Shown here piece after piece: positions 32,423 through 42,162 of a stretch of DNA of 64,000 nt. The DNA is taken from the NCBI GenBank assembly GCA_038496445.1, contig JALMLS010000166.1, positions 1 to 64,000 of the forward strand, in the 5' to 3' direction. Position 1 is the first letter of the stretch; each line of letters opens with the position of its first letter. The notes beneath the pieces are model-generated. The model was not told where the DNA came from. It saw only the letters and a list, made by a program, of their open reading frames with translations, and did no database searches. The translations under genes and the position numbers were made by a program. The DNA is from Trichosphaerium sp. ATCC 40318 (Eukaryota > Protista > Tubulinea).

Positions 32423-32639
32423 TTATGCTGAAATGTGCAACCACATGTTTGGTATTTTGTCCTTTTCAATATTTATGACTGTTACACCTGCCAATTGTTT
32501 TATCCCATCATTCGTTAATGTACAACTACCCAAGTCAATATGATGCACACCTGCCAAACATGATAGAGCATTATCTCTTAGTTGTGTACAACCATACATC
32601 TCTATACAGGGTATACCAGCCAGAAGTTTCATCACGTGC
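32423..32639 (-). pseudogene. LRR fragment or orphan exon related to the F-box/LRR family
   Basis: LAGIPCIEMYGCTQLRDNALSCLAGVHHIDLGSCTLTNDGIKQLAGV; only 2-3 repeats, preceded by a CTAAC branch site and AG. Confidence 0.55.
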
Positions 32640-32727
32640 CTTGAAGATTATTTTTGCAATTGTTTCGTTGTGTTAGAAAATACTCAACTCCTTCATCTTG
32701 AATTTGTTAATTGCTGAACGATTGATT

Positions 32728-37735: not shown

Positions 37736-38192
37736 TTTTTGCGACACGTAGAATGCTACGTTGACAAGCTGAAAGAACTTAACGTAAACTTAAAGCAATT
37801 AGCAATTAAGTTAATGTGCCCAAAAAAAACCTTGTTGTTGCAGGTACAACTCTTCAAAACCGGCAACCGGTAACGCCCCAATAAACAAGGAGCACCCTAA
37901 ATGGACATATAAAAAAATAGGCTTAACAACTGTGGTTGTGCACGTGTTTTTATCCAGAAAAATGATGTCTGTTTGAAATTGTTCTTTTTTTTTTATTTCA
38001 TTCTAGGACACGACGCCAAGCGCTACGATCTACTTTTTAGTGATTGTATTACGTGCGCTTGGCATCAGGTACTATAGTACAAGATTTACCACAGGTATTA
38101 AAGACCTGTGGAAGGCGTCTCGAGACGGTATATTTTTTTTTTTTTGAAAGGTAAAAATGTTCTGTATCGCTTTGTTCAAAAAAAAATCATTC

Positions 38193-39750
38193 CTACTTGG
38201 ATTGTGATGAATCAGAATCATAACGACGCCTCTTTCTTGCTCTTCCATCGCTACTAGACGAAGAAGAAGAGCGAGAAGAAGAACGACTCCTAGAACGAGA
38301 AGAAGACGAAGAAGAACCAGACCTAGATGACGAAGGTGATCTTGATCGTCGTCTTCTTGGAGGACTTCTTCGTCGACCTCTTCGAGGACTATATGCTGGC
38401 CTACAAAAAACGATAAGTACAACTGAAAACAAGCACAAAAAAAAAGCTGTCTAAATTGCGTCACGCACCTTCTTCTGTCGTCTCTACGACGTATAGGCGA
38501 CCGTCTACCTCTAGGCGGGGATCTAGAGCGATCACCACGAGTATCACGCTTATCTACAGCACTCTTTTCATTCGTTTTTTCAACTTCCTTACGCTCAGGA
38601 GAAGCCTCCTTCTTCACCTCCTCCTTTTTCACCTCATCCTTACGATCTCTATTACTCCTGCTTGAACTTCTTGCACGCTTGCTCTCTGAAGGCCTTTCTC
38701 TGCTCTTTTCATCACGTCCACGACGATCTCTATTATCACGACCTCTATCTCTATCATCACGCCTTCTATCAGCTGGACGTCTATCTCTGTCGCCGAATCT
38801 ATCACGGTTATTCCGCTCAGGACTTGGTCTGGATCTCTTAATGCCTCGTCTGTCTGGAGAGCGATCTCTCCTATCCCTATCGCCATTGTATCGTCGCACA
38901 GGTGAACGTCTGTCTTCAGAGCGGTTGCGAGCATCTCGTGCCGGTTTATCGTCCGATTCACGCGTAAATCGGTCTCCAGTGTTACCAACAAGGCGTCCTT
39001 CTCTCTCAGCCCTTCTACGGTGTTTACGCTCTGATTTTTCGCGTTTCAAACGCTTGGCATCTGCTTCTAGACGTGCTTGCATCCTGGCTTTTTTGGCCTC
39101 CTCTTGGCGTTCTCGGTCAAATGCATAGCCTTGTTCGTAGTTTGTGTCGATTCCAAGGGCGTTAGCCATAGATGTCATTTGTTTTTCTTTTCTTGCTGCT
39201 AACGTGTGAGAATCGGTCCTAGTAACGTGTGAGAACTACCTTAGGCGAATAGGGTGATTTTCATAGTGAAAGGTCTCAACTTACTTTTTTCTGTTTCGTT
39301 GGCGTTCCTTTTGGTCCAATGCTGCCTCTTCTTGCTCAAACTTCTTTCTTTGCTTATCCATTTCAGCATCAATGGCTTCTTGTGGTAATCTGTGATTAAA
39401 AAAGGTCAGATGGTACACAAACGCTACAAGTAGGCATATACGACGACGTAGATCGTTCGAAATTGTGAATAACAGCTCAATTTAAAATTAACTGCTCAAA
39501 CGCACCCTGAGTCTAATAAATCTTGTTCCTCGGCCCATTCGAGTAGTTTAATTTCTATTTGCCTCTTTTTATCGTGTGCTAATATTGCTTTGTCTGGTTT
39601 ACGTTGACGTGGTTTAGCTGCGTCGTCCAGGTTATCAGTTCTGAAGTGACTAATATTCTTTTTCCATGACGGCAAGCTAGCCCAATTGCGCTGCACATAA
39701 CCACTTGTACCAGAACCCCTAGGGGTACGCAATCCAATACCGTTGTACAT
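38193..39750 (-). CDS. CWC21: Pre-mRNA splicing factor CWC21/SRRM2-like
   Basis: [63 protein letters not shown]-rich tail. Confidence 0.92.
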
Positions 39751-40138
39751 TCGCTCAAATGCAAAGCTGTTTCGCCAGAAACTGACTTAAACCAGAGATA
39801 AGTCTAGTTAGCTGTCGTTACTCACATTTCAATGTTCTTGCAGTTCTGTATTGTAGAGATTATAAGCGCTTGGCATTTATTCAAAGTGCAATCAAAACGA
39901 ACGTTTGGGTTTGCTAGAGATGGAGAAAGCAACAACGAGACATCTCAATGTCATGCCGAAGAAAAGTCCATCAAGCAACTACTCGTACACATAACCATCA
40001 CGTGTTACGTTACCGTTACAACAACCTCCCCTATTAATACTTCAATCATATTGTAGGTACACAACTCATTCATGAGCGTAGGATTGACTTACGCCTTGTT
40101 TTTCATGAAAAAACAAAAAGTTACATTTATCCAAGAGC

Positions 40139-40369
40139 ATGTGTCACAAAACAAAATGTAAACAGTGTAAAAAATGGACCTGGACAGGATGAGGGTTACA
40201 TATTGAGTTTGCGCTTCGTGGTGTTGCACCTGAGAAGCGTTGTACTTGCCCTCCACCAGAGAAAGGATATAAGGGTTTTCTAGGTGGTGTAGTGCGCCGT
40301 ATACTTACTGGCGGCAAAGAACCGAGCACTGGAACATCCGCAGAAACTAATTCAACCGAACCTACATGA
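40139..40369 (+). CDS. Candidate 76-aa selenoprotein (in-frame TGA at 40190-40192 read as Sec)
   Basis: MCHKTKCKQCKKWTWTG(U)GLHIEFALRGVAPEKRCTCPPP..EPT*. TGA sits within a WxG-x-GxH motif and a SECIS follows the stop. Confidence 0.8.
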
Positions 40370-40407
40370 AAACGTACCTTACGTACAAAAATAACTAATA
40401 TATGCGA

Positions 40408-40489
40408 TTGGTGGCTATAATCCATGATGTTACAGGTAACAAACCGAAATGGCTTACTTGTACTGAAGAAACCATTTTATGGCTACCAA
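40408..40489 (+). promoter_or_regulatory. Eukaryotic type II SECIS element
   Basis: Helix I TTGGTGGCTATAA/TTATGGCTACCAA; core ATGAT (40424) / TGAA (40464); helix II GTTACAGGTAA/TTACTTGTAC; unpaired AAA at 40441-40443; apical mini-stem CCG-AAA-TGG. Confidence 0.85.
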
Positions 40490-40737
40490 CACGCTGTTTA
40501 ATGTATAAAAAACCAATATAAACAACTACTACGAACAAAAAAAATCGACGGGTTATCCCTGACCTTGTGTACCTCAGTACGCTTTCACACTTGTACATAC
40601 GTCTCGATCATATGGTCAACTTGTTGAAAGCAAAATCTGGTGACGTTTTATTTGGCATTTTTTAAACAAGTCGTTCACAGATTGCGTGTTACACATTCTC
40701 CCTGTATCGTGTCGCTTGGGTGTAACCATTTGATGAT

Positions 40738-41078: not shown

Positions 41079-41198
41079 AATTGTACTTTTTGAAATTATT
41101 TTATGAATGAGATTTGGCTTCAATTACGTATTTCAACGTCAAAATCCGGTTTTGTGTTTCAAGAGTCAAAATATTTATTAACGGGTTATTACACGGTG

Positions 41199-42162
41199 TT
41201 AATGTCTCTCAACTCTGATGTCAGCGCACATGTAGAATACAGGTGGAGCATTTGGATTCTTTGTTACATAGCGGACACCAAGAACAGCATGTTGGGTAGG
41301 GACACTAATGAAGCAAGTCAAAACAAAACTCAGACAAGAAAAGATAATTTTTTTGAAAACAAAAAAAGTCACGTGACAATTTAAGAAAAACGGTTGATCG
41401 GCGTACTCTGGCATTCTTACTTCTTCAGTGTAAATAGTGAGAGAAGGCGTTCCAGTATCAGGTACAGTCTAGGCAATACAGTCATAAAAAAAATCTTACT
41501 AGTTTGTCTCGTACCTTTAAAATTTTTCCAGTTGGCTCTCCAGCGACCTGTTACAAATTTGTGTTAGCTGAACTTCTATTCACTTATGCTACGTACAGTG
41601 TAGGTGATTACGAACATACCAGGCGTTGCAGCGACCCAATGATCTTGGTTCTAAACGACTATAAGACACAACGGTTTTTTTATCTCATCAAAAGTTTTTG
41701 GTGTTTGTTTTCGTACCTTTTGGAAGATAATGCTTGCGTTCTTTCCTGCTTCGTAAGAAATCATTGGGTTATCAGCTGGTACACCACCACAAGGTCCAGT
41801 GAGAAGAATACAATCACCAGACGCTAAAATTCATGAGAAAAAAGCTAATTAGTAAAAGACTTGGGGAAAAGACGCGATACATCCGTTTTTCGGCATTCTA
41901 GCGCCGAAACGCTAGGAGATTACCCTTTTTGATAATCTACGCCTGGATGGAGGTGAAGTTGACACTTCTTACGAACTTTACAGCTGCCAAAAGGGGTTCT
42001 GTTGCCAACGCTTTCTCAGGAAAATACAGCGAGATTTGTTGGTTTTAGCGACCACGTACCGGCTTTGTTAACGTTGGAAAGAGACCCACGTTGGTGAGGA
42101 GAAAGGATGCATACGTGAGCAGACGCGAGACACAAGAAGACGGACAAGAGGAAGAGCTTCAT
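41199..42162 (-). CDS. Small secreted protein with His at mature position 1 (histidine-brace/LPMO-like candidate)
   Basis: Signal MKLFLLSVFLCLASA then HVCILSPHQRG..GPCGG..FQK|NQDHW..PGMFVITY..YVTKNP..FYMCADI. Confidence 0.7.

Follow-up and report, generated by a model that had tools for sequence, protein, structure and literature searches.

The candidate gene lies in a eukaryotic setting, as its neighbours in the window (the whole stretch of DNA analysed, 64 kb) are intron-bearing, with introns of 46-116 nt that have GT-AG ends. The upstream neighbour is a spliced minus-strand gene encoding an RS-rich, cwf21-domain protein (38000-39750, start codon inferred at ATG 39750); the long Arg/Asp/Ser-rich tail of this protein is SRRM2/CWC21-like. 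The downstream neighbour is a spliced EF-hand gene, also on the minus strand. At 41150-41824 (minus strand) a strongly expressed gene with internal exons of approximately 30-61 nt and introns of 46-102 nt is present in three RNA runs. No tRNA gene was found in the 64-kb window. The coding part of the candidate locus comprises the following features:

39751-40138, no strand assigned: divergent intergenic and promoter region of approximately 390 bp (388 bp from ATG to ATG), between the cwf21-domain gene and the candidate gene
40139-40369, plus strand: coding sequence of the candidate selenoprotein, a single exon of 76 codons including that for selenocysteine (Sec), followed by a TGA stop
40190-40192, plus strand: in-frame TGA, the proposed Sec codon for residue 18, in the motif TW-T-G-U-G-L-H, aligned with Cys in 151 of 151 homologues
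40313-40336, plus strand: tail residues 59-66, part of GGVVRRILTGG, which match the bacterial C-terminal motif hydrophobic-x-x-R-L/I-x-G in a MAFFT alignment

The divergent layout, with the two start codons 388 bp apart, suggests that the cwf21-domain gene and the candidate gene share a bidirectional promoter. The sequence-only reading had proposed a hidden selenoprotein gene at this position, and the frame that it described is borne out: 17 codons from ATG 40139 (MCHKTKCKQCKKWTWTG) are followed by TGA (40190-40192), 58 open codons and a TGA stop (40367-40369). The limits of the coding sequence are based on the gap-free homology of residues 1-42 to a bacterial protein family and on RNA contigs that cross it without a joint. 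Ordinary gene callers cannot see a gene of this kind. The terminator of the candidate gene is thus itself a UGA, placed 57 nt ahead of the core of the hairpin described below; its readthrough would append 16 residues, the next stop being TAA 40418-40420, within helix I of that hairpin.

The GC content of the ORF is 45.5%, with a host-like GC3 of 28.6%, while that of the bacterial family genes is 69-75%. This low GC content and the intron-bearing eukaryotic setting therefore identify the candidate as a resident, codon-ameliorated gene and not as bacterial contamination.

The 3' hairpin and transcripts of the locus

The minimum-free-energy fold of 40405-40495 (plus strand) is the hairpin that had been described from the letters alone, and all of the SECIS hallmarks claimed for it are present. 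Its elements, all on the plus strand, are:

40408-40489: type-II SECIS-like hairpin of 82 nt in the 3' region, defined by the ViennaRNA minimum-free-energy fold and a descriptor
40408-40420 / 40477-40489: helix I, 13 bp
40424-40427 (AUGA, 5' side) and 40465-40466 (GA, 3' side): SECIS core, an asymmetric internal loop
G40429-C40463 plus 40431-40439 / 40454-40462: helix II, 10 bp, with one bulged U
40440-40443: unpaired CAAA (AAA at 40441-40443)
40444-40445 / 40451-40452: apical mini-stem of 2 bp (type II)

The hairpin starts 38 nt past the terminal stop, has a folding energy of -22.1 kcal/mol (z = -3.05) and remains the optimal structure when the complete 191-nt 3' region is folded. The opposite strand folds worse (z = -1.32), as is expected of a complementary strand where G-U pairs matter. 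The AAA begins 13 nt after the AUGA core (criterion: 10-13 nt) and the distance from the UGA to the SECIS is 234 nt, both of which are inside known working ranges.

When our own SECIS descriptor was run over both strands of the 64-kb window (128 kb), this hairpin was the sole match, and the expectation was 0.033 matches per first-order-Markov random window (128 kb, both strands). The thresholds of the descriptor were set after the element had been seen and are somewhat post hoc, so that this figure is indicative only. The Rfam SECIS covariance models gave no match to the hairpin at the gathering score or at E<=10; because the Rfam E-values are multiplied by 4227 families, this result is only weak negative evidence.

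Three sequencing runs (X2, X4 and X7) were judged to be RNA because their contigs skip the GT-AG introns of the neighbouring genes and leave intergenic DNA uncovered. Contigs of two of them define the transcribed stretch:

40126-40427, strand unreadable from the contigs: transcribed stretch (X2 contig 40126-40422, X4 contig 40181-40427)

Both contigs run unspliced through an intact TGA, with no sign of splicing-out and no TGT or TGC at this position, which answers the question of an unspliced UGA raised with the original proposal. The X2 and X4 runs give no coverage of 39876-40009 or 40428-40635, and no RNA contig of any run covers the latter. The contigs end 5 nt apart, at 40422 and 40427, and reach only the first ~20 nt of the hairpin, so that the SECIS body is uncovered; a short, weakly expressed transcript whose coverage fades toward its 3' end would account for this gap. 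No contig for the candidate gene was present in X7, the largest RNA run.

A further contig, from run X1 (169 nt, with a different organism label and ~94% identity), spans 40193-40360. The eight listed differences in the X1 and X2 contigs, which are differences between strains or species, are all located 3' of the TGA, and seven of them are synonymous while one changes Thr to Ala; across tail residues 59-66 nearly all of the X1 differences are synonymous. The 7:1 pattern argues that the stretch downstream of the TGA is translated and under purifying selection. Since an antisense ORF (40144-40425) shares its third-codon positions with the sense frame, the strand is fixed by homology only.

A Cys-rich microprotein family

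Metagenome contigs were scanned with a back-translated 50-residue query that joins both halves of the frame through an X in place of the TGA. Four loci were identified, encoding proteins of 52-53 residues that share 53-61% identity with residues 1-49 (tblastn E = 1e-14 to 9e-18 over this segment, the E-values being scaled to the candidate stretches only). A Cys occupies the TGA column in all four metagenome loci and in 151 of 151 homologues, as the proposed Cys/UGA alignment required; the count for column 18 rests on an alignment of 150 cores and on two irregular sequences. Each of the 150 cores aligns to 40139-40258, through the stop. This homology, known from sequence comparison, is the result on which the reading would stand or fall.

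Sixty further proteins of 47-84 residues, each named "hypothetical protein" at source, come from Thermoanaerobaculia, other Acidobacteriota, Microbacterium and Nocardioides. Family loci were confirmed in at least 592 species-representative bacterial genomes, and the family is very widespread in Acidobacteriota and Actinomycetota. The eukaryote-associated relatives found are (i) a 67-residue Cys form (P0034, locus L005) on an AT-rich contig that carries RasGEF genes and is therefore eukaryotic, and (ii) a Cys form of 39 residues that is encoded, in identical form, on a contig with the giant-virus marker domains DUF5871, P11_C, EsV_1_7_cys and DUF5760 and on an IMG/VR contig of 481 kb (L093:4001-4120 and L094:3001-3117). 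The two have in common the variant C-K-K-F-T-W, which hints at virus-host exchange. A family of this pattern (MC..CxxCxKxTWxGCGxH..CTC), with Cys at the TGA column, had been proposed for bacteria and fungi; the bacterial part of this proposal is confirmed, while no fungal members were seen.

Residues 1-42 of the window protein align with the family without gaps, and the nearest members are identical to it at 25-28 of 39 positions (64-72%). In an alignment of 26 sequences the invariant residues are M1, C2, C7, C10, K12, T14, G17, C18, G19, H21, L26, G28, V29, P30, R34 and C35, all of which the window protein keeps in register except C18 (UGA) and P30 (Ala). The family pattern can be written M-C-x4-C-x2-C-x7-C-G-x-H-x13-C-x-C/(x-G-H), and the C-terminal motif is also conserved, being R-I-L-T-G in the window and R-L-F-G in bacteria. 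The alignment thus makes the window protein a clear member of the family, with the UGA at an invariant Cys; the incorporation of Sec is itself inferred.

Neither the window protein nor the family has a Pfam or NCBIfam match, in agreement with the earlier statement that no known selenoprotein family could be recognised, and a PDB profile search with the family gave nothing significant (best E 1.8). When the two halves were searched separately, the 27-residue N-terminal piece had no Pfam match, and the 58-residue C-terminal piece had no Pfam match, no Atlas match and no word-sharing candidate. Three phmmer matches to the C-terminal piece among 1.8 billion proteins (P0001-P0003) are spurious tandem-repeat proteins. 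Their E-values are inflated by 5-8 repeated weak matches, which calls for caution in searches with short queries. A weak tblastn cluster at 32609-32665, obtained with the family against the window, is at chance level.

In the literature, no account of the microprotein family as a selenoprotein was found; with incomplete coverage, this amounts to no more than absence of evidence. The family was previously unnamed and is very probably new to the eukaryotic selenoproteome, the decoding mechanism being a known one.

Bacterial gene neighbourhoods, predicted structure and the role of residue 18

In Microbacterium three genes run in the same direction: that for a 561-residue fusion protein comes first, that for a 95-residue CsoR-family regulator second and that for the microprotein third. 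The fusion protein (Pyr_redox_2/Pyr_redox_dim/Rhodanese) is of the CoA-disulfide or CoA-persulfide reductase type (CoADR-rhodanese). Of 50 actinobacterial loci, 19 have a same-strand CoADR-rhodanese gene whose end lies 9-100 nt upstream of the microprotein gene, and 27 have a CsoR-family gene within ~3.5 kb (mostly within 2.5 kb); in 32 there is at least one of these two genes or the gene of a related 484-residue flavoprotein. The CsoR-family neighbour has two Cys in x-C-x-C, and its metal-ligand position is not occupied by His. The x-C-x-C signature has been assigned to persulfide-sensing CstR proteins (bioRxiv 10.1101/2021.07.25.453692). A metagenomic locus (L097:1788-7504) has the gene order Pyr_redox_2 (SQR-like), DsrC-like, DsrE-like, microprotein, CoADR-rhodanese and a second flavoprotein.

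The CoADR-rhodanese/CstR context is rare at acidobacterial loci (3 of 29), and acidobacterial neighbourhoods contain no conserved partner gene. Most of the acidobacterial ORF clusters considered as partners consisted of spurious ORFs of high GC content that overlap the microprotein gene itself. In Thermoanaerobaculia (L007/L008/L009:1-5165) the microprotein gene follows that of a 600-residue protein without Pfam domains, and a Cas9 gene lies ~4 kb away; no functional link between the microprotein and Cas9 is evident there. The 64-kb window contains no CoADR-rhodanese or CstR-like gene, as expected for a eukaryote.

The description of the protein as a metal-binding or redox-switch microprotein, offered in the sequence-only reading, remains plausible, and the bacterial neighbourhoods sharpen it toward persulfide or sulfane-sulfur chemistry. 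Because the Cys forms are co-encoded with a CoADR-rhodanese fusion and a CstR-type sensor, we propose a persulfide/sulfane-sulfur or redox-reactive function for the microprotein, a proposal to which we give not quite even weight, as it is inferred from neighbourhoods only, mainly those of Actinomycetota. This functional inference rests on actinobacterial operons, whereas the window protein most resembles the acidobacterial members of the family. Both CoADR and rhodanese have known bacterial Sec forms (PMC13188914), and therefore the use of selenium in this chemistry has a precedent.

In an AlphaFold model of moderate confidence (pLDDT 71.6), C7-x2-C10 sits on a beta-hairpin and C18 at the start of a helix. 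Neither Foldseek against the PDB (E above 2) nor a wide VIA-align structure search (Z below 2) gave a significant match. The secondary structure is compatible with a zinc ribbon or treble clef, with weak Foldseek and Pfam rows only (UBZ, C5HC2 and zinc ribbon). Across the family (150 aligned cores) the last ligand swaps between C37 and H38, a Cys/His alternation that is typical of structural zinc sites. Judged from the alignment, this suggests that the C35/C37 knuckle may be the metal site, with C2, C18 and H21 left free; we favour a Zn-stabilised scaffold with a putative reactive centre composed of C2, C18 (U18) and H21.

The same data can be read in another way, with residue 18 as a metal ligand of a metal-binding or metal-sensing microprotein (for Zn, Cu or a soft metal), in which Sec would tune the affinity and the product would still be a selenoprotein. 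This reading draws on the seven invariant Cys/His residues, on the modelled CxxC beta-hairpin and the helix from C18-x2-H21, which resemble a treble clef or zinc finger and have the weak UBZ, C5HC2 and zinc-ribbon rows noted above, on the placement of the neighbouring regulator in the CsoR metal-sensor superfamily and on the fact that many bacterial selenoproteins are tied to metal handling (PMC13188914). However, the His found in Cu/Ni sensors is missing from the regulator, which carries the x-C-x-C motif of persulfide sensors, the conserved partner is a CoADR-rhodanese and not a metal pump, and the C37-to-H38 swap points to the C35/C37 knuckle as the metal site, so that C2, C18 and H21 would remain free. 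It is established, moreover, that Sec nearly always stands in for a catalytic redox Cys. We consider a ligand role for residue 18 unlikely; it cannot be excluded, as a model of this confidence does not resolve which of the predicted Cys and His residues bind metal.

Decoding of the UGA, origin of the gene and known systems

In eukaryotes the standard route to Sec insertion is directed by a UGA together with a SECIS in the 3' UTR. On the evidence given above, the locus very probably contains a genuine, resident gene, expressed and made up of a single exon, whose product is a selenoprotein of 76 residues and for which the Sec machinery, the presence of the SECIS on the mRNA and the incorporation of selenium are inferred.

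It is very improbable that the locus is instead a pseudogene or nonsense allele, in which an acquired Cys gene would have undergone a TGY-to-TGA mutation and would yield only a 17-residue peptide, the hairpin being coincidental. A single substitution is sufficient to convert TGT or TGC into TGA, and with the SECIS body not covered by RNA contigs its inclusion in the mRNA is unproven. Against this, a hairpin meeting all criteria is expected by chance only ~0.03 times per 128 kb, or ~1e-4 times in the few hundred same-strand bases just downstream of this ORF; the TGA is retained in two different run sets; and the 58 codons past the TGA are open, show seven synonymous changes to one and end in a conserved tail motif. 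Selenium-free readthrough of the UGA, by near-cognate insertion of Cys, Trp or Arg or through a lineage-specific quirk of the code, with some other role for the hairpin, is very improbable. The conservation data demand no more than full-length translation, and the terminator of the ORF is also UGA, but the hairpin is specifically SECIS-shaped, with a correctly spaced AUGA/GA core and AAA, and the UGA falls exactly at the invariant Cys. Some long ORFs of the window end in TGA, which speaks only weakly against this reading, as many end at introns. That the antisense ORF (40144-40425, minus strand, 93 residues) is the real gene and the sense frame an artefact can practically be dismissed, as this open frame with its own ATG, although the variable sites fall on its third-codon positions and the contigs cannot reveal the strand, has no Pfam match, no gene-collection record and no homologue, whereas the sense frame has >600 homologues with up to 72% identity. 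Open antisense frames are known to arise as by-products over real genes. The one observed here probably results from the coding constraints of the sense frame, and it could mislead gene callers.

For the selenoprotein gene we propose the following mechanism. The SECIS kink-turn (40408-40489) in the 3' UTR would recruit SBP2, eEFSec and Sec-tRNA, and the UGA at 40190-40192 would be decoded as Sec, which replaces the family-invariant Cys18. The product would be a small, probably Zn-stabilised scaffold in which Cys18 (Sec18) with Cys2 and His21 forms a reactive centre that may attack persulfides or other sulfane sulfur, or may shuttle redox equivalents with a reductase-rhodanese.

The history envisaged begins with a bacterial gene that would have reached the amoeba by horizontal transfer, followed by codon amelioration and then by the Cys-to-Sec change, accompanied by the origin of a SECIS in the new 3' UTR. 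Given the broad bacterial spread of the family and its very few eukaryote-associated members, horizontal acquisition followed by Cys-to-Sec conversion is the parsimonious order; the direction of this conversion is inferred and not demonstrated, because the sampling of homologues was blind to bacterial UGA forms. A tree built from 40 columns places the window protein among acidobacterial-type sequences, apart from the other eukaryotic and giant-virus pair, without strong support, and we therefore make no firm claim on the donor or on the number of transfers. The more specific scenario, in which a Cys microprotein of a persulfide regulon (CstR/CoA-persulfide reductase) was captured by an amoeboid eukaryote and only afterwards underwent Sec conversion and SECIS birth, is put forward as a possibility that we rate below its alternatives taken together.

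The gain of Sec is considered difficult and extremely rare (PMC2375036). If capture preceded conversion, the gene would represent a clean, datable Sec gain; if the bacterium-to-eukaryote Cys-to-Sec history holds, it would be a natural experiment in the de novo origin of a SECIS; and the protein would be, if the proposed chemistry is true, the first eukaryotic selenoprotein dedicated to sulfane sulfur and persulfides. New eukaryotic selenoprotein families are rare, and each marks a Cys with chemistry demanding enough for selenium. Here, the residue that Sec singles out as reactive is Cys18, in a bacterial family that occurs in at least 592 species and is absent from Pfam and NCBIfam. The annotation is mutual: the Sec of the amoeba marks the bacterial Cys18, and the bacterial operons suggest a persulfide/sulfane-sulfur role for the amoeba protein, which gives directly testable hypotheses.

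Among known systems, zinc knuckles, treble clefs and UBZ fingers resemble the window protein in the predicted CxxC beta-hairpin and helix, without a significant match. The sulfur-relay proteins and their relatives (TusA/DsrE/DsrC, rhodaneses, CoA persulfide reductase and CstR-regulated cst-like operons) are the genomic company of the bacterial Cys forms and have no homology to the microprotein; the expectation common to both is a conserved reactive Cys that carries sulfane sulfur or attacks it, and the likeness of the microprotein to them is based on neighbourhood only.

The eukaryotic selenoproteins SelenoW/H/T ("Rdx"), SelenoK/S and MsrB1 are, like the window protein, small, with one UGA at a Cys-aligned position and a SECIS within a few hundred nt, and their decoding is presumed to be the same; the window protein shares no sequence, Pfam or structural similarity with them. 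In contrast to the thioredoxin-like CxxU motif, its Sec is located in G-U-G-x-H. The small Cys-motif selenoproteins of bacteria (NF041197, "dual CXXC motif small protein", and CYCXC, PF13798; PMC13188914) are likewise tiny and Cys-rich with one Sec, and neither was matched in the NCBIfam and Pfam scans of the microprotein family.

For the algal selenoproteins AhpC_b and SymSEP an origin from prokaryotic Cys proteins has been proposed (PMC7539508), which is the same history as that proposed here: a prokaryote-type family with a Sec form only in a narrow eukaryotic lineage. Their folds are AhpC/thioredoxin-like, whereas the window protein is a Cys-rich microprotein without a recognised domain. 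The closest comparison is with the bacterial family itself (Thermoanaerobaculia, Vicinamibacteria, Holophagales, Microbacterium and Nocardioides; e.g., P0012, P0014 and P0053), whose members are of similar length and share with the window protein the C-terminal motif R-L/I-x-G and the residues M1, C2, C7, C10, K12, T14, W15, G17, G19, H21, R34, C35 and C37. The window gene differs from them in the replacement of Cys18 by Sec, in a Ser/Thr-rich tail longer by ~20 residues, in AT-rich codons and in a monocistronic eukaryotic setting with a eukaryotic SECIS.
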